64,000 nucleotides of DNA from Oopsacas minuta. Lineage: Eukaryota; Animalia; Porifera. The notes below the pieces were generated by a model. That model had not been told where the DNA came from and made no database searches. It saw only the letters and a program-made list of their open reading frames with translations. The position numbers and the translations under genes were made by a program. Numbering within the stretch: position 1 is the first letter of the stretch; each line of letters opens with the position of its first letter. Below are positions 38,327 to 56,963 of this stretch, one piece after another. The stretch lies in NCBI GenBank assembly GCA_024704765.1, contig JAKMXF010000111.1, forward strand, positions 1,008,619 to 1,072,618. The letters run 5' to 3'.

Positions 38327-41300
38327 ATGGCTACTCTTAGCAAAGGCACATCTTCTGACCCTCAGTTTGCAATTCGCTACAAACAAATCGGTATGTACTA
38401 TTTACTATCAGATTATTTGTATATTCCAGTATTCTTTACATTAACAGATACTTTCAGAGTTAATAAGGCATAAATGCATTGTATGCTAATTTTCCCCATA
38501 AAACAGAATAGCTATTGTATTTAAATAAATAAATAAAATTAAATATACGTATAGTACTTTTTTGTTGCCTACAGTAGAGTTATTAGGGACGAATTTTTCA
38601 CATTTTTATTAGAATATCTAGCACTCTAATCTGCTTTGTTATTCATAATGTATAATTACTATTAATTAATTATCTGTATTTGCAATCAAATAGCATAATG
38701 CGTTGTATAATCCTTATTGACATCATGATACAGTTCTTTCATGGGGATGACGAATACTATGACCATCTGTCTAAACAGATATCAGCTAGATTACAATCTG
38801 GTGTTACAGATTCTAGTGGAGTAGCCTCTACAGAGTATCTATTTTCTCGTCTTGATACTCTATGGGGGTTCTTTGCTCCTCTTGCTACTTCCTACTACCT
38901 TATGGCTCGTTCTGGTAAGCCGTATACCTCAATTAAGACGGATGCTGGTTATATTATTGTGTTTCAGAAATTTGGAGAAATACTTTGTATCGCAGTTAAT
39001 GGAGATGGAAAGGAAACTGAATTAGAAATGTTACGTAAATGCTACATACTGCATACACTCACTAGGTTATTCGTTGGTCCTCTAGAAGACCAGCTTAATC
39101 CTGGAGACATGGGTGCCCGTACAGAGCTATGGAATAAAATTGGTCGCTGTATAGACTCGTGGAGTTATCTATACAGTAATCGTCCTGCTATCCTCGTAGA
39201 AGCGATAGAACGCCTCCAGGTTAAAGAGGAGATCAGTTTCAAGTGTAGAGAAGAACTAATGAGATGTATGTCTTCTCTAAAAGTCGCAGAAATATCTCCT
39301 ATTCTACACTCACTTGTGTTTGTAGATTCCAAACTATTTCTTCACATTTCTCATCTAGATCCCCCGTTAGTATCTCAATCATTTCTTATCCTATCAATGT
39401 ACGTACAAGCAAATTTCACAGATATTAACTCTGCCTATCCACCTGAGACTGACATTAACAACCCATTCTACACAAAGGAACGTCTCTTCCTTCCTACAGC
39501 TGCTGGAACTATTACTCCCCTTACAGTGTACTGTGTAGGATTTGGTGTTGGAATGGTATTAGTATTATTAGTACGATGTGGTGATCCAATACTAGCTAAC
39601 AATATATGTACATCAATAAGCTCTATTCAGACTATAACAACTCTATCTAGTCTGAACAGACGACCTGAGAATAGTAGAGATCTTATTGTTCTTATTGATA
39701 TGTACTTAAAGAGATCAGCTGATACGTGGAATAAAATCAGCTTTGCTAATGGTGCGGATCAATTCAAATCCATGTGTGGGTCTGTTATTGCCACCTGGGA
39801 GAAGTGTAAAGCTGATGGATTAGCTGAGTCTATTGAAATGAGGAGATTGGAGCCATCCCATGAGAATCAAATTAACAAGGTGCTCAGAGATCTACAGAAG
39901 ATATTTACTATTCTGTACTATGCACGTGTTTATAGGAAGCAGTCTGATGCTGACGGAATGATGTTCTGCTGTAAAATACTCAATACAAAATTCGCTACAG
40001 ACTATGGAGATTTCTTACAAGTGAAAGCAGAGAGGAATATACACGCTAATATAGATGTCAGTAACTATCATGGTCTTGCTTACTATTTATTCGTGAATAG
40101 GAGGAATGATTCGTATACTGCTGTTAATTTCTGTGAGCGTGATAGTGTCGTGGGAGTTTCGTGTCTAGACGAGCTCACAGGAAAACGTGGAAAGAAGAGC
40201 GGAGTTTTGTTAAGACAAAAGGTATGGGATTTGGTAGATAGAGTACACAGATTCTCACAACATGGCTGTACTCTACAAATATGGGAAGAAGAAGATTTTG
40301 TTTTATCCTACCATTTATGGTTCTGTAATCAACGCAGTGGGGTTAGGATAGCCTGTCAGGAACGTCTATTCTCAGAGGGCATACCTCCAGGAATACTCAC
40401 TGATCCTTCTTCCTACAAAAGGTACGGAAGAGAAGTGGTTGTATTAGAATTATACATGATACATATGAGAGATACAAACCTGTGTGGAGTTATAGCAAAT
40501 GCTGAATTGATTAGTGAGAAGTTATGGCAGCAGAGTAGAGAATCAGCTCCTCGCTTCGCTGCTATTCTATGAGTACCATGAATTTATATATTTCGTAATT
40601 ATTGAGAATTATGACAGACATGAATTCAATATTTAATTTGTTTATATGTAATTATACTTACCCTCATATGATTCAATTCCGGAACAAAAAAACAAAACAT
40701 TGACTCTAATATATAATAATTATTCAGATGTCGGCAAGAGCTATTTATCAATAAATTTACATTAGGGTATGTATAAAATTTTGTTGTTTCTAGATGTAAT
40801 CAAGCAGATGTTAAATTTTAATGAGAGATGTTCAGATGGATCTCTATTAACACGACCAGTATGGAAGGTATGTTGTGTTACCCAAATCCTGTTAATTGCT
40901 ACTTGCTGAACTGTGTGTAATTCAGTTGTGACATTTGTAGACAATGAATTCTCGTTCTCCTACTAGCAAATCGCTATTGCATAAACTTTAATCGCTAATA
41001 TGTGAATTTGCTATTTTACAAACAATTTACAATACAAAAATGCACTCTATGTCCATGATAACGTTGATAATAAACCTACTCTACTATAAGACGATTGCTA
41101 ATAGGCGAACATCACTATACTGTACCTTGACAAATCTGTATAGAAAAAATTATTTTCGTTTTATATGTAACTGTCCCCATATAGGTATTAATATATGACA
41201 GACTGGGACAAGACATTATATCACCCCTGCTTACAGTTAAACAGCTGAGAGATCTAGGCGTAACTCTACACTTGTAAGTAATAATTATACACAATTTAAT

Positions 41301-44300
41301 TATCAATAGTGTATAAGCATATTGTTCATAATATCTTTAATCTCGATTTGTTCAACTCGCATACGTTGATTATCCATCCTTCCTTATCAATCGCAAGTCC
41401 TCTGATATTTTTGAATAAAGAACAGATTTTGTGGATCAGTTTTCCTTCCCAACTGTGAATCACGATACTCCCAGTATTAAGACCCGCTAATTCCTCGCTA
41501 TCTTGGCAAGCTAATTTCCCGCTATCTTGGCAAGCTAATTTCCCGCTATCTTGACAAGCAATCAGTAAATTATCGAAATGATCGATGGCTAGGAAATCTG
41601 GAGATCTTATCATATCTAATTTCATGTTTCTCACGAAATCTCCACATTTTGTATAAAATGAAACTTGAATAGATTTTTCCTTTAAAACAAGTAGATATTC
41701 TTTATGCAGCTTAACATCCATTGGTCTTTCCCCAAAGCATATCCTTCTTACAATAGGCAATTCAGGTATTAGCATAATTATGCATTCACTACCAGAATTA
41801 CAGATATATGTTGTGTTATCGACATCTACTGCCACGCCCATAGGAGAGGATAACTTGATAATATAGCTTGTACCTGAGTTAGCAGTTGATGTTATGAAGG
41901 AGCCATCTAAGCTGAATATTTTCAACTTGTTACCTCCTTTCTCTGTTACGAATACAAGGGAGTTTCTGATACACACTCCCCAGGGATATTTCACTGCTTG
42001 GTTGTGAGGAGATTTATCTCCTTGAAAATTAAAATGGTGCTTTAGTTCTTTATCGAATACTTGTATTCTGGAATTGAGAGCATCTGCTACATATATGTTT
42101 CCATTTATGTCATCTAAAGCTAATGTTTTGGGTGCTTGTAACTGATCTATATTGGTACCCCAATTTATCCCAGCTTTCTGAGGAGATTTTATCAAGTGAT
42201 ATCTGTCAAAATGTGTTGGCTTCTTCTTCTCCATTTTTAACAATAGTTATCTACTCTATATTACAAACAAAATTGTTTAAAAATTCAATTTTCGGGTAAT
42301 AATTCATACATAAAGAATCGTTGAAATATAACAGTGGACCTGAACATGACAATGGCCTGATGCTTTAACACAATATTGAATATAATTAATCTCTTTAATC
42401 CTTGCCAGACCCCTCCACACGAAAAGGGACTCTATCACAGAGGCTCCAGCTGTCTACTTCATACTTCCTACTGATGAGAATATACAGAGGATATGTCAGG
42501 TATATAAGTTTCAATTCATGGGCACCTTTTCGGGCCAAACGATCCTACAATTCCTCTACTAATAGCACGGTATAGCAAGTGAATTTCATGTAAACTAATA
42601 GGGGAATTCCACTTTAACGTAACTCGTGAAGTAGAGAACTAGGATTTTGAGATTTTCTAAATAGGATATCAAACAACAAGTTTACGGGACTTTCTATTTG
42701 AACTTTTTAACAGCTATATCAAGGGAGAAGTTAGAACACATTGCACTGGCAGTTTGTCAGTCAGGAAATACAGAGATTATATCAAAGGTAATTTTCGTTA
42801 ATTTATGTAATTTCCAGTGTAAGATTGTTTGAATGTGAGCTATACATATTGGATTAGTTTATATATGTTCAAACTAACTATGATAGATTGAATTACTGTT
42901 GTAGTTAATCACTCAAACCTCTATTAAATACAAAGGAATATTAATTTTCTGCGAAATAAAACGAAAATCTATTTACAACCAGCTGTCCAGTAAGTAATGA
43001 TGGTAGATTAATATAATCACTGTGTAATGTTAACCTCAATAAGTCGTTGCTGTAACTGAAATCTTAATTGCCATGGCCGAAACTAGGGCCATTTTGGCTT
43101 TGGGTGGGCACGTGTGGGTCGTGCGTGGACGTGACGCCATCTTTGTCTACCCAGATTCAAGAACCTAGTTACGTCGATGTTAATAGCAACATACGATACA
43201 GTTTGCTTATACAGCTTATAACCAGCCAAGCTAGATTAAGTGGCTTAATAACTACTATGTATTATTGCAAATTTGAATAGTTTTTCATTTAATTTTATGG
43301 GAGGGGGAGTATAGAAATAATAAGGGATTGGAATAGCAATATACCTGAATGAACTCTTGACACTTATTATTCTTGTCAGAATTCTTATTGTGAGTAAGTA
43401 ACACGGATAACAGTTCAGTAATTAAGTGACAATACAATAACTATCCTAAGGTTTCTCCACAAATCCTATTTACATACTATAACCATAGAAGTATCGAAGC
43501 CTTGGCTATGAACAATACCTGGCCTAACAATATATTACGAGTCTATTAGTTTTGATTCAACTTTATGATATATATAAATAAGTGTTTGATACAAAATATA
43601 ATATTTAAAATACTTCTAAATAAATAAATTCAAGAATGAAATGGAAGAGGTTTTCTCTAATAATGCTATTGACTATGTTTGATATATTTCTGATCATATT
43701 AACGATTTTACCAATGCTATTCAGCAGTCTAATGCCTCCTCCATCTCTGAACGAGACTTTTATCATCTCAAAGTATAACGAAATTCTTGAGAAAATTGAA
43801 GTAAACGCTTGTCCTTACCCTCTAGAATTAACTGATAGTCTCTGTCAATTCCCAGACTATTCAACTTTTCCAGAATGGAGATATTCTGCGTTGATAACTG
43901 CGGTTTTATTTCTAATTTTCAACTTGTTTGTGTTATGCATTTGGTTCTTTCATCGTAGTCTGAGGAGAGGGATATTTATCGGTCTCATTATCATTCTATT
44001 GCTATCACTATTGATAAGTATCATATTCAATATATCCGCTTATCATACTGTTGATGATGGTTTGTTTGCAAAAATGGTCTATGAGCAAATTCTCGGTTTT
44101 TGCTTACACTTCAAGTTGATCAGCTTTTTCTTGTGGATTAATTTTCATCTTTTCCAAGTGACATACATTCTACTTTTTCCTACATTTCAACTTCCTATAA
44201 ATACATGCTCTGCTACAATCTGTAAGATAACGCTAGCTACCATACTAGCCTTAATAATCCCTTCAATTAATATTATATTTTTGGATGGATACTCCCTTCT

Positions 44301-47300
44301 AACTTTCTTGCCTCTGCCAAGAACATGGGCTGGATTCTACTACCTCCTAATTTTCCCTCTTTGTTTATTGAACTCTTCTACTCTTATCCTTGCAACTCTC
44401 CTTGCTATGGTGGTCCGAAAAATTAAAAAGTCGGTCGGAGATGCGAACGTTCTCTGGTACACCCCCCTTACATCCTACACGGTTAGAATGTTCCTGTTCT
44501 TCGCTGTCGGATCTCTACTCCTCGACCTTATACTCAGTATGTCCCTGGTTGTTAAAAATCACGAATTAATTTTCAACACTAACGAGACCTTCTACTTAGC
44601 TATATCAATAGTATACAACAGCAAGATAGCAATGGATTCTACAATGAACTATCATAAACGGACAAGTCTCAATGTTCTGAAATTATCCTTTATTCCAATA
44701 ATACTCTGGCCTGTCTGCTTGCTATGCTATGAACTAGCTTTCTCCTGGACAACAATAACCAAATTGGTAACTAAATGGATGGACAGTATACAAGGCTTTT
44801 GTCATATCACATTTCTTCCTCTCAGATCTTCAGAACAACAATTACCATCTTCTTCCAATTAATTATTATTTTCTGATAAATATAGTTTCAATTCATATTT
44901 GGTGTATCAGAGTTTGTGTAGAATTTATTGATTTAATTGGACTAAGGCCGAATACTGTATTTCCCCTGGGGCTTATCCAATCAATATTATTATTAATATT
45001 ATTTTGGATAAATGATCGATTCCATTCCCTTCTCATTGAATTTTTTCCCAACTTTCCATCAAATCTTACAGTGTCGAAAATTTATTCAAAAAGCTAGAGA
45101 ATAATAGGTAACTATATACTAGAAACTACAGTAACTTGAACAGTAAATTTTCATATTCTGTGTGTATATCTAAATACGGTAAATTCTTTCTGTGACAGGT
45201 TGTGGATCAGTTCTTGAACTTCATTGCTATAGAAGACGATTTGTTCATCTTGAGGGAGTACCAATCTGACCTTATCTCTTATCAAGGTAAGATATCATAG
45301 ATACATATAGGTATAGTATTTTAGAGGTAATGTATGACATGTCACAAACTATCTCATTTAGCTCTAAACAGTTCTAGTGTGAGTGAAGCTGAGATTACTG
45401 GTATTATTGAAACAATTGCAGATTCTCTTTTCTCAACATTCGTGAATTTAGGTTGGAACTTTTCCTAATTAGTTGTGTTGGTTGTCTTCATCTTATTTTA
45501 AGAGATACATAATTTAAAACTAACTCTAGGGGTGGTCCCGATTATCAGATGTTCCCCATCGAATGCAGCAGAAATGGTTGCCGAGGTAAGAATTATTTAC
45601 TTTGTAATTGCCTATAATTTTACTGATTACTTTAGAGTTTAGACAAGAAGATACGCGAGAACTTAGCTGATATGAACAACAATCTATTTGTACCTAATTT
45701 TCAAAACTTCTCACATCTAAGGTACAATCCTTTTTCTTAAAATTAAATAACAATTAAGCATACTTTATTATTAGTTTCAATCGTCCATTGCTGATAATCC
45801 TAGACAGACACATAGATTTAGCAACACCCCTGCATCACACATGGACATACCAAGCTCTTGCACATGATCTATTGGTAATATACATACCTTATTATACAAA
45901 ATTAGAGGATAAATATTTGAAAATATTTTCATTTCTTAGCCTAATTAATTATTTAATTAATTAGTATGGTTCTTCTAAACCCAGTCGTATATCGGAATAA
46001 ACGTAGGAAGGAAGTGTCACTGCAGACAATTCAATTGAAGATTTTCGTTCAGTATTTTATTGATGACATTAATCATGTTAGGTCTATTGAAGGAGCTATG
46101 TTAACACATACCGAAAAAAAGATTTGTAAAGATCACTAAAATTACAGGAAATATACAAATATGATATAAACCGTCACTTTAATATGATATTCTCAAAAAG
46201 TGAATTTTTTGAAAATTCCTGAACTTTGTGAGGTAGTATTTTTTGAAAGCTCCACTTTTGCGTCCCATTGTGAACGTGTTATTAAGGTCATAGAATTAGG
46301 ACTCAGGGAAATACACGCGAAGGAAATTAATTAACGAAATTTGCAGAATATTAGAAAGTTAATTTCATGCAGCGATAATTTTCTGTAATAAGGTACACTA
46401 CGTGTGTGTGTGTGTATTATGCGGTTTCATTTCACAGATGTTTCAAAATCACATAATATTCACATTCTTTCCATATTTACAAGACTTCTAATAACTATGT
46501 ACATGCGTAGAACATGTTGTTAGTATAAAACATATTTATACATTTTAGGGCCTAAATTTAAACCGGATAATAGTCCCCCCAGACACAGAATCACGTTTAC
46601 GGAACCCTGATGCAGGTAAGATGAATAATTCAATCTCTTCCATCCTACCAATGGGTACGGCTTAAAATTTTTGATATGGCTTATAGATACATATTGTATT
46701 CTACTAATTTTTATTATTGCTAATAATACTAAATATGCATATATATGAGTTTTCATCAAATTACTGATCGAATAATATTGTCATAAGGAATTTTCAATGC
46801 AATTCAGGGTAAAATTATTCAAGTGTTCTTTCATCATCAAAGAACTAAATCCTTCGTTATGTCCTGTCTCAGGGAGACTACCAAATTTGAGGCATTTAGG
46901 ATTACCGAGTTGAAGCTGTGTGCTAAGATTCGCCGCTTGGTAAAGAGCTTTTCCCTGCCATATTGGAACAACAAAATCATTTTCTCCATGTAAGATGAGA
47001 ATTGGCAAGGCAACTGCTAAGTGAGGCACCTTGATGTCTGAGTCAAAATTTATCTTAGTGCCATTCGAAAGCCATTCTGCATACTTCGGTATTAATCTGT
47101 ATATCGAGAATAGAGGGTAGGAATAAGCTGCTTTTATAAAGTTAATAAACGGGCACTCTAAAACCAACCCTTCCGGCATTCGAATATCTGGCTGTTCCTT
47201 TAGAATCCGAAACAACGCCTGGATAGATATACCACTTCCTAGCGAGTGTCCCCAAAGATATAGATGTGCTCCCGGCTCAGAATGCTTCAGTACATATTTA

Positions 47301-50300
47301 TATACACCAATCGCGTCATTTGTCAGTCCCTCCTCACTAATTTGACCCGGACTATCTGCGAAACCTCTGTAATCGTATGTAAGTACTTCAAATCCCTCTC
47401 CGGATAGAAATTGGTAGAGTGAAACTCTGTGGTACATCGCGCGAGAAGCAAATGTACCGTGATTATAAATTACGATAGGTCCAAACCGTCCAAACCTCGG
47501 AGGAGTTTTGCTCACTTCTTCTAGAGCCGAGGAGCGGGGAAGGATGTGCCAGGCTCCGATCTCCTCGCATAGGTCATGCGTGATTTTCAAATTATAACTG
47601 TTTGGGAAGCCAAAGTGAATCGGGTTGTCAAGGTCAGCGAATGGAGGAATGTTGATGCGATTCATGTATGCAAGTTCAATTTGCAGCCAATGTGAAGATC
47701 TGACTGTCAATGGTAATATTATGTAGGCAATGACAAAAGAAATGTTCAAAAAAACGAACAGAAAATTGGATTTTGTGATTAGTCTCAACATAGCCATCAA
47801 AATAAGTTGACAATCATGTTTCATCACTGCTAAACACGGTACTTATATACTACGAATGTGGTAGCGTAATTTACTTCAAAAGATGTGGGAACTATATTTT
47901 TTTCAACTATGTAATCAAATCACTGTCAATTCTACCTTGTGGATAATATAATATAAATTCGAGAATTTCCAGCAGGAAATGACTCATATGAGTATTACAT
48001 GCTTATCAAACACACGCACAGTTAGTTATGTTGTTGCAGGATTAAATGCAGAATTTCTCAGCTCTTATGGCTTACACCTTATTATCGCCTAATTAAATTA
48101 ATTCATCGCGAAAGAAATACGCGTGATTTGGATCCAATAATTTTCAGATACATTAAATTACCGCGATGGAGGGGAAGAATATCAACAAATCAATAACATC
48201 GTGGAAGCTGTATAACCGACACCTGTATGATCAGGAATGTCTCTATAATCCGACTGTGTTTCGAATCTGAAATAGCTTCCGAGTTCTGACAATACAAAAT
48301 CACCTGCATAATCCAACCAAATTTTCATGTCCCACACGACCACGAGTGTCAATGTATCCTGTTTCCACTGCACATAGGTCTATTTATTTATAGAAGCAAA
48401 GACCTACGATCTTCAATCAACAGATACATTTTGGAACACATTTAAAGGAAGGTAATTATTCACTATATTTACAATTAAGATTTTGTTAATTTGAAAGTAT
48501 TTCTTTCAACCTTAGCCCATTCCCTACAGTAGCCGAGTCAATTCAAGCAGAGCTAGATGCTTACAAAGCACAAGAAGGAGAGGTTAAGAGGCTAAAGGAT
48601 GCTATGGTAAGATACCCTGTTATGTGATAATTATAAATTTGTGATTAGCTGTACTTTAATAGGGACTCTCCGATACAGATAATCCTGATGTCGTAAGTGG
48701 GGCAATTGCTTCTAGTACTGCAATGTTAACATCTGCTATAAGGTAATACTTGTGCAGTCTTGATCTTTTGTAATGAAAAGGATTAATATTATTTTGTTTC
48801 TTTATTTTGAATTGTTGGGTTCATGCTCAGCTTTTAGAAAATTTGTTTAGTATGTTAATGTCATTAAATCTATGCCAATTGTTAATATATTTAAGCTCTC
48901 TCCCTGAATTGATGGAGAAGAAGAAATCTATTGACATGCATACAAACATCGCTATGACTCTCTTAGACAACATTAAGGTATTTGTGGATATTTATTGCTC
49001 ACCAGCTGATTAAATACGTATATTCGTTATAGGAGAGAAAGTTAGATGAATACTTTGAGATAGAAGAGAAGATCATGACACGTTCAACAATAGTATGTGA
49101 ATACAATAACCTTAATAACAAATTGATGTGATTATATGTCTTTTCTTTGTAGGATAAAGGGGTATTGGATATAATTAGGAATCCACAAGGTATTTAACTT
49201 GTTAGAACATTTTATATATATAATTATCCTAGAATTTATATAAATAAATGAGCTATAGATAGTATAGCACAGTTTTGTAAATATCTATAAGGAATTAAGG
49301 ACGATATATATCAAATTATTCTAGGATTCGAGAAAGTGACCTCTTCCCATAGTATAGGAAAACTAATACAAAGAATTGCTAAATTAGAGATAGCTATGTC
49401 CTATGTGTATATGTTTAATGCGTAACAATTTGTATTTGTTTTGCTTTATAGCTGGTGTGGAACTGGATAAACTGAGATTGCTAGCTATTCAATATATATC
49501 TTCTCAAGATATGTCTGAGGTTTGTTATAGAGGATATTAACTAGAATTACGTATAAATCATACTAGTATTAATGAAATGTCCGTGTGTGTAGCAGTTCTA
49601 TGTATTCTAGACCTAGTTTGCTGGAATTTTGTAGTATGCATCTATATATGCACAAACTAAACGCTGAATAGAAGTCCGTAAACCAATTCTTGAGCAGTAT
49701 GGAGTTACATAAATATTAATAATCTATATCCTATAGGCTGATCTCGCTCTCTACCTCCCTTCACTTCAGAACTCTATCCACTGCTCGAGTTTGTTCAACT
49801 ATCTCAATAAATGGAAATCAATCTCCAAGCTATTGACAGGACCAGTAGCTGATGGTCTAACTGCAGGAAACACTGCTAGCTCAGTCAGGTATATATAATT
49901 CTAGATATCACATATATGCTTTAAATTTGTACAATGCACATACATGTTTGTATGTCCATATCATAAAATTACGTATTGAGATACCAGTCATACCACAGGT
50001 CAGATTTATTGATACATCACATAACTGTACATAATAGGATTGAACAGTTGAACTATAAAAGGTTGTAAATTGAAAAACACGGCATATCAGTGGAAATAGT
50101 CCGGAATCAGCATACATATCATCCCGTAAGCTGACCATTCCTTAAATAATGGACCCAATGATAAATCAATACGTACGCGTACTATAACAAGACTGTTTAA
50201 TTCATAATTACTAATAATGAATCATTTTATAGCACGATGTTTTCTAAGCTGGTATCATCCGGGTCCAAGCTTTGGACAGAGGGAGTTAAGAATCTCGTCA

Positions 50301-53300
50301 TAAGAGACAAGGTGAGATTACGATTACTTGCTTGCTCACGGGTTGATGTTATATTTATTTGTGATATAATTATTCAGAACCTACCTGTAACAAGAATTAC
50401 AGATGCTCTCATGGAGAATAAATCTATTTCGGTAATTATTCCGGTGATTATATCGCATACTGTATGTTTAGTTGTTTACATAGTCATTTTATATATTTAG
50501 GAAATCAAAGAATATAAATATTTTGATCCAAAGCTACAGTCCAGTTCATTGTAAGTCAATAGTATACGATATTTATATACTATTGGAACGAAGCAATTAA
50601 CTATACGCTCTCTTACCAACACCCACTCGTATTTACAATCTTGCAATGAGTTATTATTCACCCATTCTAATTACATTGAAATACACTATAGTGGTATATA
50701 ATGGTAACACATGGTTGACTAACTAATAAGAATGGCCTCTAAGCTTTATGTCTCAATCGTTACATCCATTTTGATGAGTCCTATCAATAATGGAAAGCGT
50801 ATAAAAGGTTTCAAGAAAGAGTATCCTCCCCTTCCCTGGTACACAGGCTCGGAGATGGAGGAGATCATGAGAGAGGAACAACTTACTGCAGAGACCCAGG
50901 ATCCTTTGCCTAAAGAAGATCCTGTTCTGCAAACACTTAGGCAGAAAGATTTAAAAATGAAGAGAGGAATAAGTTTATTTTTATCTGAAGACCCTGTAGA
51001 AGAAACTAAAGCTAAGAAAGTCTGTATTGAGCCTACTGAATCAATATCATCTCTCTCTTCAGATGAAATGCTAACCCCTACTGATATGCTTTCTCCAGTA
51101 GCTCCAGCTCCTGAAGTTGAGGCGAAGAGAAATCTTTCAGGTTGTTTTCGCTTGGAAGAGGACTTAGATATTGATGCGAGTGAGTACGAATATGGATCTA
51201 ATAGAAAGCAAACAATTTCTCCTAAAGATACAAATCAACAAAATACATCTACTGAGAAGGAGAAACAATCATCTGATCTGGTTATTGAGCCGCAAGATAC
51301 AATAATGACAAGTAGCCCCAATACTACCCCTCCTAAAGATAAAGATATTAATACCACTTCACCAGAAGTCTCAACAACTCCCATCAAGGATACACCCACC
51401 CTTACAGAAGAGGAGGTAGCAGATATAAACAGGAAGAGCTTTATCCTCCATTATGAGAGTATGTGTCGTGTAGTAGGTTTGAGTAAGGTAGGAAGAGAAA
51501 CATTATTGAAAGAGTGGCAGGAACAGGAAGTAGGATCTAAAACAAAACCAGTTGGTATCCTCAAGAACCCAACAGAAAGATTTGATATCAAAACTGATAC
51601 TAACAGTCTGAATACTCTTAATACTCCTACTACTGATAAAGTAGTGTCATTCTGTATACCACAAACCTCACTGGCTACTGATACAAACCATGTAGTTAAT
51701 GTATCACAAACTTCTTCAAATTCCAATCTACCAAGTCTGCCAACTGAATCTAGTACAGCTGGTTCAGCTTGCGAAGAACCGACTACACCTATTCTAACTC
51801 CTTCTCCCTTAATTCATCCTCTTCCATCTGCCTTCATGTCCACACCTCTCCGCGGTGTACCAACTGACAAGGGTCCTGTCAGCTCTGCCTCCTTCCCTAA
51901 GCCCCCTCTTATTTCTCAGGACATATCTATCATTCCACCTATTACCAATCAAACTAAATATCCATTCCAATCGTTAGTTACCAGCCCTGAGGTATTCCAA
52001 GCTCCTCTTTCTTCCAAAAGTGTGATTTCTCAACCTACACATCTACAGACTTCCTTCCTTGCACCAATTATGTCAAATCCTCTCTCTGTACTTCCTACTA
52101 CTTCACAGGCTATTACCCCTGTTATAATCATTTCTTCATCTTCTAACAAGCCTTTCAATCCGTTATTATTCCTATCCAAAAGCCAGGCTGTATCTACACC
52201 ACAATCTAGTCTGATTTCTAATAGCTTATTTAAAATGCCAGCTACATCATCTAGTCTTGCTAATCCTGTTTCTTTATTTCAAACTTTTCAAAATACTTCT
52301 GTACCAAAAACTACTCAAACAATCTCTTCAGCTTCTTCTCTATTTCAACTTCCAGTAACTCCTAGCACATCTACAAGTCCTGCTTACCCTGTTTCTTTAT
52401 TTCAAACTTTTCAAAATCCCGCTGTACCAAAAATTACTCAAACAATTTCTTCAGGTTCTTCTCTATTTCAACTTCCAGTAACACCTAGCTCATCTACAAG
52501 TTTGACATCTACCTCCACTCCTATCTTTAGTTTTCTAGCTCCTTCAAATTCTAAAGCTAACCAGCTTCAGCCTGCTACTAATTTACTCAAGTCAAACAAG
52601 CCATTCCATAATTTAGAGTTATCTTATTCCATTCCTACTACTTCAAAACCTCAGTTTACCCCTCTAGCTCCTAGCTCTTTCAAACCTTTACTAGCTACAA
52701 ACTCACCATTCCAGCCTGTTATCAAATCAACACCTTCCTCCTTTCTTCCTCAAGACCCTCCTGCTCCTTCTGTTAACTTCCAAGCTAATCCGGTATCTGC
52801 TCCAGCGTTCCAATTCAATCCACAACCTAGTGAGCCGCCTCTCCCAACTGTACCCACATTTACATCAGGGATACCAATGAATTTCGCATTTGGACAGACA
52901 ACAGACACGAATAGTTCTGCTATTTTCTTAGGAACTGGGGGCGGGAGAGGATCAGGATCAGGGACAAGTAGTGGCACATCCCAGTCTCCTTATCGTCCTG
53001 CTAGGAATACGTTTAAAAAGAAACGAAAATAAATACATAATCTAATATATCCTTGCTTTATTAATTAATTACAGTATACATCTCGATCAGAAGCTACAAA
53101 AAACGCGTTATATGTAACCGCTGATATTTTCTAGTATGTTATTTTCTGTGACTGGAAAATGGCATTCTTGAATATCATAAGTTGTTCTCCATTCTTGGAT
53201 GCGTGGTTTTATATATCGGCCGACACATTTGCATTTGCATATAAGTCAGCTTTAGTTTTAACTTTCTGTTGCTAATTTGTACACTCATTTACTTGTACTT

Positions 53301-55767
53301 TCTCTTATCTCATTTAGACATCGGATTACAACTCCTTTTACAGAAGTGAGTTTTATATACAGTAGTGGAACCTCGTTAATACGAACATCAACGGACGGTC
53401 CAAAAATTTGTTCGCTTTACCCGGAATTCGCATTAACCGTGTTCGTATTAACGAAGTTCCACGTGTTATTACATAAAAGCCGCATCATACGCATATATAT
53501 TGTTACACACTGACCGCTGGATACATCAAACGGATTCATGCCTACATTCGTACACTTTTAAGGAGTATAATTACTCATATGATTTACCTTAAGTCACTAT
53601 TTGCAATCACCTAGCAGTCCTGTTATATTAATAGAGTAACAACTCAATATACATTAGCTTTATAATGGACATTCAAAAGCAGATAGAATCCCGTCACAGA
53701 TCAGACCAGAATAAAGCAGCACTGTTCATACTAATATTTATAGTAACGGTAGGATTCCCTCTTTGGTGGAAGACTACAGACATACCTCGAGCTACTCTAC
53801 CATACGAGCAAGTATCTAATCTCCCTGACTTAGAGCTTGTAGAGTTCAAATACAAACTATTCTTAGTTAACAACGATAATACCATTACCTCTCAAGAATC
53901 AGCTGATCTGTCAAATGAACTGCTACAAACATGGAAATCAGGTGATGCTAATGTAACACTAGAAATAATACAAACTACATCTATACCTGTTGTAGCTCGG
54001 TCTAACGAGCTTGTATTAGTAATAGAACAATGTTCATTACTCAGACCTTCCATTACAAACTCAACAATCAATATATGCTGGGGAATTCAAACGAAACTAT
54101 TGCTACTAGATTTCATTTCGAACTATTCTCAATCTCTCCAGTCTTTCTACTTCACACGTTACTGTCTGTATCCACCTGCTGCAGGAATACAGATATCATT
54201 TACATACATACTGCCTTACGAGCTCGGTAGCCACATTCTACCGCTATTCTATTCAGATATCGACCAGTTCTATTCTCAAGTTAGTCAGCCTCTTAGAGAG
54301 TTGATAAACTTCACAATGGATTCTCAAATATACCATTTCAGTGTTATTCCAGGATTTATACTTCAAACAGTTGATGAGTACTATATATCAGAAGCTAACA
54401 TATCTCAAGTTGTTAACCGAATAGAATCATATCTAAATTCTTACACACTACAAAAACTTAAACTGAATTATCTAGTATACACTCCCAGTTTGGATAACAG
54501 GCCTCTTGGAATACGTGAGACTTACACAGGGGAATACCACAATATTGCTCTAGTAGATGATTGGGGCACAATAATTTTGACAGGAAATGATAAAGATTCT
54601 AACTATTCTACTATTCTACCACCAGTAATACACAACTTGAAACAGTTACTCAAGTTTCCATACATATTCTTTGCTACTGATGAAGTAGATCTTACAGAGT
54701 TTTATGTATTCAATCAGCTGGAGGTTAATCCCTGGTTATACAAACAAATACAATGTTATCACAATTCAGCTAAAAACAATTTGAACTCTCTTATAATCTC
54801 CATATCAGCTGAAAAGAATATGTTCATCAACACAGACATACAACTAGCTACACTCAATGCTCTAGAGCAGTTAGAACAGTGTAGACACGCATACATACAG
54901 GGAGAACTACCATCAGCATATCTACATTGTAAGGAGGGATGGGAACAGAGTTATAAGGCTAACTACGACCCTAGCATTCTTAGTCTGCTATACTTCCCTG
55001 AGGACCAGAAATATGCTATATATGTACCTCTCTTCCTGCCTCTTGGTGTTATCCTGCTACGATCTGTACCAGAATTGTGGAGATGGATACGAGGAATAGA
55101 AACATAAATTAATATTAATAATTCATGCGTATAAATATTATCAGAATTTAGAGGCTAATTAAGTGTTAATTAAAGAATAATTTTTAACAAATAGAGTATT
55201 AACTTTTTCTTGTGTATAGGCAGTAGTATTCATAGTGGGAGGAGGAAATTACACTGAGTATCAGAATCTTAGAGATTATTGTAAGGTATGTGCTCTCATG
55301 ATATTTATAAGTTGCAATAAGGACAAATTCTATTAACCGATTACGGCCGAAGTTTTACGTTCGTAATGAAAAGGAACACAATTTTACCAATTCTTGCACG
55401 AAAACGAGACATAAGCACTTTTTTACGTCATAAAATCACACATTTTCCTGGCAGTATCCGGTTAAGCGAACTCTCCTTAATCTAACAGAATAGTAATGGA
55501 GACAATTCTGGTTAATCTGTCTCTTTGATTATTCAGGACCAACTATCCTATACTGATGTAGTTGAGTACATTTTATTCAACAATTAATTTTAGAGAAATC
55601 AAAGCTCCAAACAGATTATCTATGGAATGACTGATTTGGTGAATCCAGAAAACTTTTTAAAAGAGGTAAGAATTAACTCTCATAAACTAGCCTGCTAATA
55701 ATTGATCCTACTCTCCCCCCTCTAGCTGATTGAACTAGGCGAATCTAGACCAATCCCTTCTAATTAG
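38327..55767 (+). CDS. SCFD1: Sec1 family domain-containing protein 1 (Sly1), about 26 exons, host of six nested genes
   Basis: Manual splicing: 38327-38390 MATLSKG..AIRYKQI; 40794-40867 [14 protein letters not shown]; 41185-41273 [16 protein letters not shown]; 42409-42499 [18 protein letters not shown]; 42665-42787; 45199-45286 [16 protein letters not shown]; 45775-45874 [33 protein letters not shown]; 46549-46615; 48394-48451 KTYDL..DTFW..FKG; [19 protein letters not shown]; 50501-50550 YKYFDPK; 53318-53345; 55220-55285 [17 protein letters not shown]; last exon 55726-55767. Junctions flanking the nested genes are in phase. Confidence 0.95.
38698..40572 (+). CDS. HPS1: Hermansky-Pudlak syndrome 1 protein (BLOC-3 subunit), intronless, in SCFD1 intron 1
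   Basis: Longin-type N-terminus [48 protein letters not shown]-terminal YYLFVNR and ELYMIH. ATG at 38698. Confidence 0.8.
   Translation: MRCIILIDIMIQFFHGDDEYYDHLSKQISARLQSGVTDSSGVASTEYLFSRLDTLWGFFAPLATSYYLMARSGKPYTSIKTDAGYIIVFQKFGEILCIAVNGDGKETELEMLRKCYILHTLTRLFVGPLEDQLNPGDMGARTELWNKIGRCIDSWSYLYSNRPAILVEAIERLQVKEEISFKCREELMRCMSSLKVAEISPILHSLVFVDSKLFLHISHLDPPLVSQSFLILSMYVQANFTDINSAYPPETDINNPFYTKERLFLPTAAGTITPLTVYCVGFGVGMVLVLLVRCGDPILANNICTSISSIQTITTLSSLNRRPENSRDLIVLIDMYLKRSADTWNKISFANGADQFKSMCGSVIATWEKCKADGLAESIEMRRLEPSHENQINKVLRDLQKIFTILYYARVYRKQSDADGMMFCCKILNTKFATDYGDFLQVKAERNIHANIDVSNYHGLAYYLFVNRRNDSYTAVNFCERDSVVGVSCLDELTGKRGKKSGVLLRQKVWDLVDRVHRFSQHGCTLQIWEEEDFVLSYHLWFCNQRSGVRIACQERLFSEGIPPGILTDPSSYKRYGREVVVLELYMIHMRDTNLCGVIANAELISEKLWQQSRESAPRFAAIL
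41326..42234 (-). CDS. NHL-repeat beta-propeller protein in SCFD1 intron 3
   Basis: NHL motifs APKTLALD...[45 protein letters not shown]; no RING or B-box. ATG at 42234. Confidence 0.8.
   Translation of the reverse strand: MEKKKPTHFDRYHLIKSPQKAGINWGTNIDQLQAPKTLALDDINGNIYVADALNSRIQVFDKELKHHFNFQGDKSPHNQAVKYPWGVCIRNSLVFVTEKGGNKLKIFSLDGSFITSTANSGTSYIIKLSSPMGVAVDVDNTTYICNSGSECIIMLIPELPIVRRICFGERPMDVKLHKEYLLVLKEKSIQVSFYTKCGDFVRNMKLDMIRSPDFLAIDHFDNLLIACQDSGKLACQDSGKLACQDSEELAGLNTGSIVIHSWEGKLIHKICSLFKNIRGLAIDKEGWIINVCELNKSRLKIL
41497..41559. repeat. 24-bp in-frame coding tandem repeat ([25 protein letters not shown]) in the NHL gene
   Basis: gctatcttggcaagctaatttccc twice plus a partial copy. Confidence 0.9.
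43636..44862 (+). CDS. Multi-pass membrane protein, probable divergent 7TM/GPCR-like receptor, in SCFD1 intron 5
   Basis: 408-aa ORF with an N-terminal hydrophobic segment, a short Cys-containing ectodomain (CPYPLEL...CQFP) and about seven further hydrophobic stretches. Family not assignable by eye. Confidence 0.55.
   Translation: MKWKRFSLIMLLTMFDIFLIILTILPMLFSSLMPPPSLNETFIISKYNEILEKIEVNACPYPLELTDSLCQFPDYSTFPEWRYSALITAVLFLIFNLFVLCIWFFHRSLRRGIFIGLIIILLLSLLISIIFNISAYHTVDDGLFAKMVYEQILGFCLHFKLISFFLWINFHLFQVTYILLFPTFQLPINTCSATICKITLATILALIIPSINIIFLDGYSLLTFLPLPRTWAGFYYLLIFPLCLLNSSTLILATLLAMVVRKIKKSVGDANVLWYTPLTSYTVRMFLFFAVGSLLLDLILSMSLVVKNHELIFNTNETFYLAISIVYNSKIAMDSTMNYHKRTSLNVLKLSFIPIILWPVCLLCYELAFSWTTITKLVTKWMDSIQGFCHITFLPLRSSEQQLPSSSN
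46781..47824 (-). CDS. ABHD12: ABHD12-like lysophosphatidylserine lipase, intronless, in SCFD1 intron 11
   Basis: N-terminal TM helix, [21 protein letters not shown], nucleophile [21 protein letters not shown], catalytic His in TGHN. Confidence 0.88.
   Translation of the reverse strand: MKHDCQLILMAMLRLITKSNFLFVFLNISFVIAYIILPLTVRSSHWLQIELAYMNRINIPPFADLDNPIHFGFPNSYNLKITHDLCEEIGAWHILPRSSALEEVSKTPPRFGRFGPIVIYNHGTFASRAMYHRVSLYQFLSGEGFEVLTYDYRGFADSPGQISEEGLTNDAIGVYKYVLKHSEPGAHLYLWGHSLGSGISIQALFRILKEQPDIRMPEGLVLECPFINFIKAAYSYPLFSIYRLIPKYAEWLSNGTKINFDSDIKVPHLAVALPILILHGENDFVVPIWQGKALYQAANLSTQLQLGNPKCLKFGSLPETGHNEGFSSLMMKEHLNNFTLNCIENSL
50732..53032 (+). CDS. S/T/P-rich low-complexity protein with a POM121/Nup153-like C-terminal tail (tentative nucleoporin), nested in SCFD1
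   Basis: 766-aa ORF: acidic N-half, S/T/P/F-rich C-half (FQF, FTSG, FAFG), ending FLGTGGG...[12 protein letters not shown]. Few true FG repeats, so the identity is uncertain. Confidence 0.45.
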   Translation: MASKLYVSIVTSILMSPINNGKRIKGFKKEYPPLPWYTGSEMEEIMREEQLTAETQDPLPKEDPVLQTLRQKDLKMKRGISLFLSEDPVEETKAKKVCIEPTESISSLSSDEMLTPTDMLSPVAPAPEVEAKRNLSGCFRLEEDLDIDASEYEYGSNRKQTISPKDTNQQNTSTEKEKQSSDLVIEPQDTIMTSSPNTTPPKDKDINTTSPEVSTTPIKDTPTLTEEEVADINRKSFILHYESMCRVVGLSKVGRETLLKEWQEQEVGSKTKPVGILKNPTERFDIKTDTNSLNTLNTPTTDKVVSFCIPQTSLATDTNHVVNVSQTSSNSNLPSLPTESSTAGSACEEPTTPILTPSPLIHPLPSAFMSTPLRGVPTDKGPVSSASFPKPPLISQDISIIPPITNQTKYPFQSLVTSPEVFQAPLSSKSVISQPTHLQTSFLAPIMSNPLSVLPTTSQAITPVIIISSSSNKPFNPLLFLSKSQAVSTPQSSLISNSLFKMPATSSSLANPVSLFQTFQNTSVPKTTQTISSASSLFQLPVTPSTSTSPAYPVSLFQTFQNPAVPKITQTISSGSSLFQLPVTPSSSTSLTSTSTPIFSFLAPSNSKANQLQPATNLLKSNKPFHNLELSYSIPTTSKPQFTPLAPSSFKPLLATNSPFQPVIKSTPSSFLPQDPPAPSVNFQANPVSAPAFQFNPQPSEPPLPTVPTFTSGIPMNFAFGQTTDTNSSAIFLGTGGGRGSGSGTSSGTSQSPYRPARNTFKKKRK
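52265..52501 (+). repeat. 123-bp (41-aa) internal tandem duplication in the S/T/P-rich ORF
   Basis: [33 protein letters not shown] occurs twice, starting at 52265 and 52388. Confidence 0.9.
53365..53462. mobile_element. MITE-like element (family 2) between the SCFD1 micro-exon and PIGS
   Basis: 22-bp inverted repeats gtggaacctcgttaatacgaac / gttcgtattaacgaagttccac (21 of 22 match). A similar right end (ttcgtattaaagaggttccacg) occurs at ~29164-29185. Confidence 0.75.
53665..55107 (+). CDS. PIGS: GPI transamidase component PIG-S, intronless, nested in SCFD1
   Basis: N-terminal [19 protein letters not shown]; C-terminal [25 protein letters not shown]. Confidence 0.95.
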   Translation: MDIQKQIESRHRSDQNKAALFILIFIVTVGFPLWWKTTDIPRATLPYEQVSNLPDLELVEFKYKLFLVNNDNTITSQESADLSNELLQTWKSGDANVTLEIIQTTSIPVVARSNELVLVIEQCSLLRPSITNSTINICWGIQTKLLLLDFISNYSQSLQSFYFTRYCLYPPAAGIQISFTYILPYELGSHILPLFYSDIDQFYSQVSQPLRELINFTMDSQIYHFSVIPGFILQTVDEYYISEANISQVVNRIESYLNSYTLQKLKLNYLVYTPSLDNRPLGIRETYTGEYHNIALVDDWGTIILTGNDKDSNYSTILPPVIHNLKQLLKFPYIFFATDEVDLTEFYVFNQLEVNPWLYKQIQCYHNSAKNNLNSLIISISAEKNMFINTDIQLATLNALEQLEQCRHAYIQGELPSAYLHCKEGWEQSYKANYDPSILSLLYFPEDQKYAIYVPLFLPLGVILLRSVPELWRWIRGIET

Positions 55768-56006
55768 AATAATCAGCTGATAAATGAGCAGAGAGAATAC
55801 CGAAACGCTTACCCTATAGTTGTACATACAGTATATATATATAATCATATTGCTACAGAATTTGACACTTAGGAAACAAAGTACATACAATAATAAGAGA
55901 TTGTATTAATTAATTACTTGCCAATTCACATGTTCTAACAAAAGCTCTCTCCTTCCTGAGTGTCGTTTCATAGTAATTACTCCTCTCGTAACATAATGAA
56001 TTCAGT

Positions 56007-56963
56007 CTAACTCTTCTCAGCTATGAGAATAGCAGCAGCTAGATCTACTTCACCTCCGGAGTGAGATAGTGCTATCATTGAGTTAGCTCTATCGAATCCC
56101 ATGTCAGATAACTGCTGTACTTTCTCTTGGGTTACATTCAGAGGCAACGCTGTATCATTCCTAGGTATAGGAGCAGCAGGTAATGCTCTGTTAACGCGGG
56201 GTCTCTGTCTCGGTATGTTACCCATCCAACGTCTCCTTCCCATCCACCCGCCAAGAGGAATTTGTTGTGGAACATTCCTGAGACGTGCTTCCTGATGGTC
56301 CATAATTTGAGAGCGTTGTACTTCTAGAGTAGCTCCGCTCCAAGGAATGGCAGGGGGTCTGTTGTCAGGAAACCATTTGAAGAGTGTCTCTCCCACTTCT
56401 CTCAACTTATCGGGCAGAGACAAGTAGTAAGATCTATGCAGAGTGCGCCAGGATTGTTCAAGTATAATTCCTACAGCAATACTGACTACAGCTGCTCTAA
56501 TACAGTTCTCCTCTAGCATTAGAGCTTGTATAAGAATGAAGAGTAGCAATGCATTCTCTGATACTAATAGACTTACTACGTCAAGCTGTAGAGGTAGCTC
56601 TGCTAGGAATAATGGGAACAGAACACAAATCAGTGATAAGAATACGTGAGTTATTTCATCCTCTGTTGCTGCTATGAACAAGCGACTAACTCTAGCCAGC
56701 AATAAGCTAATGAGTGTCCCATAGAATAACAGCTGTATGAACTGCCATGAGCCTAATCTTCGTTCTATGACTCTGTATTTCCATAGTATTATGAGCGGGA
56801 GAATACAGTAGGGATAAGATGGAGTGAGGGTAGCTAATAGCCTGGTCACCAGAGAGGTAGTTGGGTTGTGTAGTAATGCAGTGTTGACATAACGGAAGGC
56901 TGAGAATGCTATTACAGCGAGGGAGAGAGCTTTACAAGCAGGGGTTCTATAGAAGTATGACAT
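56007..56963 (-). CDS. UBAC2: UBA domain-containing protein 2 (rhomboid-like pseudoprotease plus UBA), intronless
   Basis: YRTPACKAL, KYRVIERRLGS..F, ATLEVQRSQIMD, C-terminal UBA EKVQQLSDMGFDR..SMIAL..SGGEVDLA..IL. Confidence 0.85.
   Translation of the reverse strand: MSYFYRTPACKALSLAVIAFSAFRYVNTALLHNPTTSLVTRLLATLTPSYPYCILPLIILWKYRVIERRLGSWQFIQLLFYGTLISLLLARVSRLFIAATEDEITHVFLSLICVLFPLFLAELPLQLDVVSLLVSENALLLFILIQALMLEENCIRAAVVSIAVGIILEQSWRTLHRSYYLSLPDKLREVGETLFKWFPDNRPPAIPWSGATLEVQRSQIMDHQEARLRNVPQQIPLGGWMGRRRWMGNIPRQRPRVNRALPAAPIPRNDTALPLNVTQEKVQQLSDMGFDRANSMIALSHSGGEVDLAAAILIAEKS

Follow-up and report, generated by a model that had tools for sequence, protein, structure and literature searches.

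The window, a 64,000-nt stretch of the genome of Oopsacas minuta, contains an intact SCFD1/Sly1 gene on the + strand at 38327–55767 (17.4 kb), running from an ATG at 38327 to a stop codon at 55765–55767. SCFD1/Sly1 is the SM protein of ER–Golgi SNARE fusion and thus a component of vesicle trafficking. The gene was modeled by taking the best in-frame GT–AG solutions between exons anchored by homology, which gave 26 exons (28–152 nt) separated by 25 introns, all GT–AG, and a product of 648 aa without a stop codon in frame. Four other assemblies, presumably of glass sponges (L003–L006; ENA accessions ERZ25069837, ERZ20067936, ERZ25766962 and ERZ25072730), were used for comparison. The exons are given below; those without further comment rest on the gene model and on conservation in the relatives.

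38327–38390, + strand: exon 1, with the ATG at 38327; FAIRYKQI aligns to the N-terminus of copepod SCFD1; kept with its GT donor in L003, L005 and L006; absent from the public model
40794–40867, + strand: exon 2; the public SCFD1 model begins here, at M27 (40808)
41185–41273, + strand: exon 3; Sec1 profile positions 2–28
42409–42499, + strand: exon 4; Sec1 profile positions 32–61
42665–42787, + strand: exon 5; Sec1 profile positions 64–96
45199–45286, + strand: exon 6; Sec1 profile positions 98–124
45362–45451, + strand: exon 7
45530–45585, + strand: exon 8
45636–45721, + strand: exon 9
45775–45874, + strand: exon 10, with the motif HHTWTYQAL; Sec1 profile positions 200–235 (58.5 bits); 420 library matches
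46549–46615, + strand: exon 11
48394–48451, + strand: exon 12
48516–48606, + strand: exon 13
48663–48742, + strand: exon 14
48896–48977, + strand: exon 15
49033–49092, + strand: exon 16
49153–49189, + strand: exon 17
49452–49519, + strand: exon 18
49737–49888, + strand: exon 19, the longest (152 nt); its 3' end is the loose end before 50231 in RNA run X4
50233–50311, + strand: exon 20; RNA joint 50311/50378
50378–50431, + strand: exon 21; RNA joints
50501–50550, + strand: exon 22; RNA joint 50550 to 53318
53318–53345, + strand: exon 23, a 28-nt microexon (HRITTPFTE) between two guest-bearing introns; bounded in X4 by an RNA joint at either end; PF.E can be aligned to other SCFD1 proteins; kept in all four other species
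55220–55285, + strand: exon 24; Sec1 profile positions 532–552; RNA joint 53345 to 55220
55594–55665, + strand: exon 25; RNA loose ends 55285/55592 and joint 55665/55726
55726–55767, + strand: exon 26, with the stop codon; RNA joint 55665/55726; the C-terminal LIELGES aligns to other SCFD1 proteins

Since 26 pieces follow each other in order, on one strand and in frame, with canonical splice sites at all 25 introns and no stop codon, the arrangement cannot have arisen by chance. The Pfam scan was run on the separate exon ORFs rather than on the joined protein, and the Sec1 matches are collinear along the profile in the order listed above. Along its full length, the joined product of 648 aa can be aligned with proteins named as SCFD1; for the Eurytemora "sec1 family domain-containing protein 1", the identity is 46% over 638 aa. 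Matches to the C-terminal part of the product carry the name "protein sly1 homolog". The product thus has a full-length Sec1 domain, and its closest relatives are SCFD1/Sly1 and not other SM proteins.

Introns 1, 3, 5, 11, 22 and 23 each enclose one intact single-exon ORF (302–766 aa), which lies wholly within the intron. We refer to these genes as guests.

38698–40572, + strand: guest 1, HPS1, 624 aa, in intron 1 (38391–40793); Pfam Fuz_longin_1; Atlas structure with TM 0.82 to an HPS1 cluster; public P0291; 69–83% identity in four species
41326–42234, - strand: guest 2, NHL-repeat protein, 302 aa, in intron 3 (41274–42408); Pfam NHL; 44–57% identity in four species, in the same intron; absent from the public annotation
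43636–44862, + strand: guest 3, multi-pass membrane (7TM-like) protein, 408 aa, in intron 5 (42788–45198); ORF; 50–71% identity in four species; absent from the public annotation
46781–47824, - strand: guest 4, ABHD12-like lipase, 347 aa, in intron 11 (46616–48393); Pfam Hydrolase_4/Abhydrolase_1; matches named ABHD12 or ABHD12B
50732–53032, + strand: guest 5, Ser/Thr/Pro-rich protein with FG-like tail, 766 aa, in intron 22 (50551–53317); ORF; public P0292; 32–46% identity in four species
53665–55107, + strand: guest 6, PIGS (GPI transamidase subunit), 480 aa, in intron 23 (53346–55219); Pfam PIG-S (E 5e-55); 51–70% identity in four species

Four of the guests (HPS1, 7TM, Ser/Thr/Pro-rich and PIGS) are encoded on the host strand, and two (NHL and ABHD12) are antisense. 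Family support was found for four of the six, namely HPS1, NHL, the ABHD12-like hydrolase and PIG-S. The 7TM guest has no Pfam match, even at E up to 10; its GPCR-clan look-alikes come from Atlas features only, and an AlphaFold model built from five orthologues had a mean pLDDT of 43, too poor for a fold search. Guest 5 also lacks a Pfam match, and its nucleoporin/POM121-like appearance comes only from Atlas features in a disordered model. Each guest is intact and is conserved across the five species; guests 5 and 6 are also covered by RNA contigs.

The six guest-bearing introns are 1135–2767 nt long, the guest ORF making up 51–83% of each, and half of the SCFD1 locus consists of guest ORFs. 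The initial annotation had claimed that every SCFD1 intron over 1 kb contains a gene, and this proved correct for all six such introns; the 19 guest-free introns are 50–674 nt in length, with a median of 75 nt. The coordinates it had proposed for the guest introns were identical to the best in-frame GT–AG solutions at every base, and its start and end of the gene agreed as well.

Besides the genes, the locus contains one repeat:

53365–53462, no strand assigned: MITE-like repeat of roughly 100 nt with 23-nt terminal inverted repeats, recognized by its inverted arms; it begins 19 nt after the exon 23 donor

In DNA-like runs, contigs were 6–8 times as deep over this repeat as over its flanks and had loose ends at either side of it. 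Scans with Rfam and for tRNAs over 37.5–56.5 kb found nothing in the introns.

The RNA evidence for O. minuta consists of contigs rather than reads, and was compared over 50200–55800. RNA-derived contigs from run X4 join exons 19–26, skipping the last two guests by way of the 28-nt microexon. Joints were found at 50311/50378, 50431/50501, 50550/53318, 53345/55220 and 55665/55726, and loose ends give the additional junctions 49888/50233 and 55285/55594. The joint at 50550/53318 removes 2767 nt that include guest 5, and that at 53345/55220 removes 1874 nt that include PIGS, while the joint at 55665/55726 reveals intron 25 and places the true end of SCFD1 at 55767. None of the X4 joints were found in three DNA-like runs (X1–X3), and a retrocopy therefore does not explain them. 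The spliced SCFD1 RNA is abundant, with a depth of about 1500, comparable with that of the guests.

Further support came from an RNA contig of a relative (L009, from SRR29297746; 2,743 nt), which is 99.5% identical to the genomic locus L004. This contig joins exons 2–7 and 9–26, still contains introns 7 and 8 in the stretch from exon 7 to exon 9, and skips genomic gaps of 4136, 3392, 1949, 2768 and 3313 nt, corresponding to guest introns 3, 5, 11, 22 and 23. Host mRNA is thus spliced across guests at introns 22 and 23 in O. minuta and at introns 3, 5, 11, 22 and 23 in the L004 species. Splicing of introns 3, 5 and 11 in O. minuta is supported by the relative's RNA and by the public model of exons 2–22 (40808–50554, 554 aa), which has exactly the length predicted from M27 through exon 22. 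For intron 1, which holds HPS1, splicing is predicted from the homology and conservation of exon 1. The picture of a single SCFD1 gene that winds around six unrelated guests, each in its own intron and in mixed orientation, is therefore borne out, with RNA joining exons across guests, and we are confident that, in the compact genome of this glass sponge, SCFD1 is a functional host to six nested genes.

The expression of host and guests may be outlined as follows. SCFD1 would be transcribed from upstream of 38327 across the entire 17.4 kb, and removal of the 25 canonical introns would yield the mRNA for the 648-aa product. The guests would be expressed as separate, complete, intron-less conserved genes, with only the 52–848 nt on each side of the guest ORF left to accommodate both guest signals and host splice signals. 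The host transcript would have to pass the poly(A) sites of the four guests on its own strand, perhaps by read-through, with splicing winning over cleavage, and these guests may be matured by spliced-leader trans-splicing.

We also considered a nested operon, in which the four guests on the host strand lack their own promoters and are cut from the SCFD1 transcript by 3' cleavage and spliced-leader trans-splicing, so that one promoter would serve five mRNAs. Spliced-leader trans-splicing has been reported for glass sponges (PMC10282587). Every start codon in the locus has an AG 1–16 nt ahead of it, and in each of the five species PIGS retains a TAG|C 6–16 nt before its start. However, an AG within about 10 nt would be expected by chance in roughly four of ten cases at this base composition, and several orthologues of the 7TM and Ser/Thr/Pro-rich guests do not keep the AG near the start. 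At none of the guests was a leader-bearing read seen. In X4, RNA contigs pass without a break from host exon 22 to guest 5 (50521–50894) and from guest 5 to exon 23 (52948–53346), as such a precursor would, but they may simply represent unspliced pre-mRNA. For PIGS of the L004 species, an RNA contig that might carry a spliced leader was sought, and the genomic contig was the only one found. Under either reading, the two antisense guests require separate promoters. We treat an operon as a tentative possibility, and one that is less probable than not.

A further-reaching proposal is that the SCFD1 transcript is a polycistronic precursor that would release HPS1, 7TM, the Ser/Thr/Pro-rich protein and PIGS from its introns, whether excised or nascent, by cleavage and spliced-leader trans-splicing, and that the guests in turn lock all 25 ancestral introns of the host against loss by way of cDNA, the process that left most glass-sponge genes without introns. 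The host introns would be locked because deleting a guest-bearing intron would delete a gene. We consider this combined scenario rather doubtful.

The nest is the same in the related species. All four other assemblies have the same SCFD1 exons, with AG/GT at each homologous boundary, every splice site in the same place and no stop codons, and the SCFD1 protein is 85–90% identical without gaps. The initial annotation had suggested that the presence or absence of each guest be checked in the orthologous introns of relatives; all six guests were present in all four, with intron and orientation unchanged. In one lineage, intron 3 houses an additional guest. In rooted trees of PIGS and ABHD12, the other four species form the sister group of the L004 species, and PIGS identity in the most distant pair is only 51%. 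Since the same six guests occur in all five species, the nest predates the deepest split among them. It is thus older than their last common ancestor and has remained frozen since then, with host exon boundaries and guest positions and orientations unchanged.

The most economical origin of the nest, judged from the sequence comparison, is a separate insertion of each guest, as conserved coding exons lie between all of them. One insertion per guest would have taken place into a pre-existing SCFD1 intron. Because all six guests were in place before the five species diverged, these events cannot be individually ordered or dated. No trace of an insertion scar was seen at any guest, and there was no A-run of at least 8 nt on the 3' side of any of them. 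The guests are intron-less but do not show the poly(A) relic of a retrogene. Insertion scars are expected to be lost for old events.

Alternatively, fewer than six events could have been involved, either by insertion of a block that was later split by intron and exon changes, or by introns that swallowed their neighbors during genome compaction. The lack of remaining scars is compatible with such a history, as is the equal age of the six guests within the sample, which gives no order of arrival. Moreover, about 60% of glass-sponge genes are single-exon (Table 1 of PMC10282587), so that intron-less guests are no proof of retroposition. However, neighboring guests are parted by coding exons that can be aligned with the SCFD1 of distant eukaryotes, including the 28-nt exon 23 between guests 5 and 6, and a single block cannot yield this layout without further rearrangements. 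The extra intron 3 guest in one lineage also indicates that single genes come or go in these introns. An origin by fewer events is therefore unlikely.

Intron positions were also compared with those of the copepod Eurytemora. Only intron 2 coincides exactly; the copepod positions mostly differ and some exons are missing from its assembly, making the comparison uninformative on the ancestry of the guest-bearing introns. Other full-length SCFD1 relatives (tapeworm, red alga, choanoflagellate and ichthyosporean) were no better in this respect.

If the SCFD1 pieces were a dead copy, with a working gene elsewhere, the exons should be decaying, as the initial annotation had pointed out. Instead, the frame is intact, all 25 pairs of splice sites are canonical, spliced RNA is present at the depth given above, and the four relatives retain the gapless protein and every splice site. 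In addition, a protein database search found the SCFD1 C-terminus in no other O. minuta protein. A dead copy is thus highly improbable. Mis-assembly as the source of the interleaving can be dismissed almost entirely, since the order is the same in five independent assemblies and contigs from DNA-like runs are collinear with the window over 50200–55800.

The public annotation represents this locus incorrectly. The O. minuta SCFD1 model is truncated to 554 aa, starting at M27 in exon 2, and a second model (P0151) fuses PIGS to SCFD1 exons 24–26. The PIGS guest itself shows 100% identity to an O. minuta protein encoded on contig JAKMXF010000111.1. The NHL, 7TM and ABHD12 guests have no gene call in the O. 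minuta annotation, and the protein database contains no O. minuta entry for the ABHD12-like guest. When the 7TM protein and the PIGS protein of 480 aa were looked up exactly in public assemblies, neither gave a match, which led to the finding that the public models differ or are absent. The expectation that an ORF-based annotation would miss SCFD1 holds for pure ORF callers, such as the ENA gene calls on L003–L006, but not for the public O. minuta annotation, which has the gene in truncated form. The O. minuta genome has been cited for "lacking key metazoan core genes" (PMC10280926). Given the truncated SCFD1, the PIGS–SCFD1 chimera and three uncalled genes, gene absences inferred from O. minuta models need to be re-checked at the DNA level, introns included.

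Nested genes are a published trait of glass sponges, and nesting is not exceptional for this genome. The genome of Aphrocallistes vastus contains 2,432 nested genes (Francis et al. 2023, PMC10282587), and the O. minuta annotation shows only 83 owing to the annotation method (PMC10282587). Those nests are similar to the one described here in that they belong to the same clade and consist of single-exon genes inside introns of multi-exon hosts. However, that report gives counts and one example (glassin), and the SCFD1 locus is not described in its main text; here, one host carries six guests in six separate introns, fixed in five species. The phenomenon itself is thus already published, and what is new is the SCFD1 locus and the faults in its public annotation. 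The locus represents a clean, RNA-supported case of extreme nesting that is unchanged across a deep divergence, and in which a 28-nt exon must be recognized between two gene-filled introns. It should be well suited for testing how splicing, polyadenylation and perhaps trans-splicing stay apart in a compact animal genome.

Host/nested gene pairs in mammals and Drosophila (PMC11694760, PMC3192792) likewise have the guest wholly within a host intron, on either strand, with potential for transcriptional interference and premature polyadenylation of the host. In those animals, however, the introns extend over tens of kilobases and have ample spare DNA, whereas the SCFD1 guests fill 51–83% of introns of 1.1–2.8 kb. 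The spliced-leader operons of nematodes and tunicates resemble the locus in that genes on one strand lie close together and have an AG shortly before their start codons. Unlike in those operons, the "downstream" genes of the SCFD1 locus lie inside the introns of another gene, rather than after it.

The region between 38.3 and 55.8 kb of the AT-rich window (G+C ≈35%) contains six long ORFs of 302–766 aa, distributed over both strands, with short ORF fragments on the + strand between them. One by one, these fragments matched the Sec1 Pfam family, with profile positions that rose monotonically along the DNA across the matched fragments.

Pfam matches to the Sec1 profile
41185, + strand, profile positions 2–28
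42386, + strand, profile positions 32–61
42665, + strand, profile positions 64–96
45196, + strand, profile positions 98–124
45758, + strand, profile positions 200–235
55220, + strand, profile positions 532–552

Full-length relatives were retrieved via one conserved exon, 26 peptides were then anchored on the window, and every in-frame GT/GC..AG combination between adjacent anchors was enumerated. The initial annotation had described SCFD1 as threaded around six genes, and the best splice solution reproduced its six intron coordinates to the base. A further 60-nt intron (55666–55725) was found from an RNA joint and places the SCFD1 stop at 55765–55767, in agreement with the end previously assigned to the gene. 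The final model has 26 exons (28–152 nt), 25 GT-AG introns and a 1,947-nt CDS. The 648-aa product is 46% identical to the Eurytemora “sec1 family domain-containing protein 1” (627/648 residues aligned), with a comparable alignment to a choanoflagellate homologue.

Genes carried in SCFD1 introns (intron coordinates, strand of the guest)
38391–40793, + strand, intron 1: HPS1, 624 aa (Fuz_longin_1; TM 0.82/0.85 to an HPS1 cluster of the Atlas of protein structure and feature clusters)
41274–42408, − strand, intron 3: NHL-repeat protein, 302 aa (Pfam NHL)
42788–45198, + strand, intron 5: multi-pass membrane (7TM) protein, 408 aa (GPCR-clan look-alikes, by language-model features only)
46616–48393, − strand, intron 11: ABHD12-like hydrolase, 347 aa (Pfam and homology search)
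50551–53317, + strand, intron 22: disordered Ser/Thr/Pro-rich protein with FG-like tail, 766 aa
53346–55219, + strand, intron 23: PIGS, 480 aa (Pfam PIG-S, E 5e-55)

The guest ORFs occupy 51–83% of their introns and 50.5% of the locus, against 11.2% for the coding sequence of the host. The 19 introns that carry no guest measure 50–674 nt (median 75 nt). “Nucleoporin-like” is a lead only for the 766-aa guest. The 408-aa membrane guest (43636–44862) had no family match in a Pfam search; its nearest Atlas clusters were Frizzled/Smoothened-, secretin- and cAMP-receptor-type membrane regions (score 0.91, 173–176 shared features), it lacks a cysteine-rich domain, and its structure model was unusable. 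O. minuta reportedly lacks frizzled A, so this guest may deserve proper classification.

Four sequencing runs from one O. minuta sample were mapped, as contigs, on 50200–55800. Three were DNA-like: their depth was even, and their contigs were collinear with the genome. The fourth, the RNA run X4, yielded spliced contigs at a word depth of ≈1100–1580.

Exon joints in X4
50311/50378
50431/50501
50550/53318, skipping 2767 nt including the 766-aa guest
53345/55220, skipping 1874 nt including PIGS
55665/55726

The third and fourth joints show that the 28-nt exon 23 is truly used between two gene-filled introns. Ahead of 50233, loose contig ends in X4 spelled out the last bases of exon 19; others linked exons 24 and 25. 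Other X4 contigs ran unbroken from exon 22 into the 766-aa guest and from that guest into exon 23, which is compatible with pre-mRNA.

Candidate poly(A) signals lie 20–180 nt upstream of host acceptors. An AG is found 1–16 nt upstream of every start codon (38327, 38698, 42234, 43636, 47824, 50732, 53665 and 56963), and is kept across species for PIGS (TAG followed by C), SCFD1 (CAG or AAG) and HPS1. This pattern fits a spliced-leader acceptor, and a spliced leader of ≈37 nt has been reported from glass sponges (PMC10282587). We therefore retain a putative “nested operon”, in which same-strand guests would be matured from the SCFD1 transcript via the leader, as an unlikely reading; no leader turned up at this locus. 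A retrocopy as the source of the joined exons was ruled out, since the joined forms were absent from the DNA-like runs.

The threading of SCFD1 around its six guests extends beyond O. minuta. Searches with PIGS and ABHD12 led to 51–70% identical proteins on megabase contigs in four ENA assemblies, from which loci centred on ABHD12 were taken. The O. minuta exons map in order in all four relatives save at locus ends: exon 1 was not found in L004, the locus of the most distant species, and exons 24–26 lie beyond the end of a second locus, L006. When the O. minuta phases were applied, AG/GT flanked every boundary and the CDS contained no stop codon, giving proteins of 85–90% identity aligned without gaps. 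All six guests were present in the four relatives, with introns and orientations unchanged, at 32% to 83% identity to O. minuta. In outgroup-rooted trees of PIGS and ABHD12, the L004 species and the remaining four formed sister lineages; together with the shared guests, this makes the nest older than the deepest split sampled.

RNA was also found for the L004 species. Protein P0007 (417 aa; 83% identity to the SCFD1 model, gapless) led to L009, an RNA contig of 2,743 nt (SRR29297746) with 99.5% identity to the L004 genomic locus. Exons 2–7 and 9–26 are joined in it, and guest introns 3, 5, 11, 22 and 23 are skipped. Introns 7 and 8 are retained (L009:415–847), with a stop directly after exon 7. 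This contig represents an isoform with retained introns or else an unspliced intermediate. In the window, a UBA-domain membrane gene (56007–56963, − strand) converges with SCFD1, with 240 nt between the stop codons (55767–56007). L009:2030–2741 holds the 3′ ends of both genes, whose 3′ UTRs therefore probably overlap or abut.

Some features differ between species. Intron 3 of the L004 species alone holds a second gene (L004:16817–18025, − strand of the locus, which is the host strand), a 403-aa intron-less ORF that resembles histidine decarboxylase of the bacterial type; its NF002748 score, 198 bits, falls short of the family cut-off. No counterpart was found in the window or the other loci, and the ORF could be horizontally acquired. 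Gain and loss of this gene would be distinguishable only with an outgroup; either way, genes enter or leave these introns singly. Intron 5 of the same species contains a hAT transposase fragment (L004:12722–13066). Intron sizes drift, while positions are fixed: intron 10 (45875–46548) is 674 nt in O. minuta vs. 81–126 nt in the four relatives, and intron 18 of the L006 species reaches 2.6 kb (reverse complement 13208–15821) with no ORF ≥90 aa. In O. minuta, a ≈100-nt MITE-like repeat with 23-nt terminal inverted repeats (53365–53462) lies in intron 23, 19 nt past the microexon donor, and a second short dispersed repeat lies in intron 24 (55332–55465). In the DNA-like runs, both are covered at 5–12× the depth of their flanks and have many loose contig ends.

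The simplest history has at least six placements, since every guest is set apart from the next by conserved coding exons. A poly(A) relic has not survived at any guest. Their lack of introns is no argument for retroposition, because ≈60% of glass-sponge genes are single-exon (PMC10282587).

The public annotation divides the locus differently. An O. minuta protein on JAKMXF010000111.1 (GCA_024704765.1) matches the PIGS guest at 100% identity. This 526-aa protein is a PIG-S+Sec1 chimera (53665–55767), the final 59 residues of which are SCFD1 exons 24–26. The public SCFD1 model (40808–50554) has 554 aa, the length predicted when translation starts at Met27 (exon 2), continues through exons 2–22 and reads into intron 22 as far as a TAA. 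This exact match indicates that it shares exons 2–22 with our model and lacks exons 1 and 23–26. HPS1 and the 766-aa gene are present. The NHL (41326–42234), 7TM (43636–44862) and ABHD12 (46781–47824) guests have no gene call and were absent from the protein collection searched; the ABHD12 homology search returned zero O. minuta entries. The uncalled guests agree with Francis et al., who attribute the low count of nested genes in the O. minuta annotation (only 83) to the method used (PMC10282587). In practice, the locus shows that the public gene set is unreliable inside introns, and its faulty models bear on published claims of gene absence from the O. minuta genome.

Gene nesting is widespread among animals, and glass sponges have been described as unusually rich in it (PMC10282587). 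The SCFD1 locus, itself new, is a well-documented case within this known phenomenon. Whereas NEMF, in the same window, carries eight guests in one intron, SCFD1 is distinguished by six guest-bearing introns in one host, by a structure unchanged in five species, and by a microexon between two guests.
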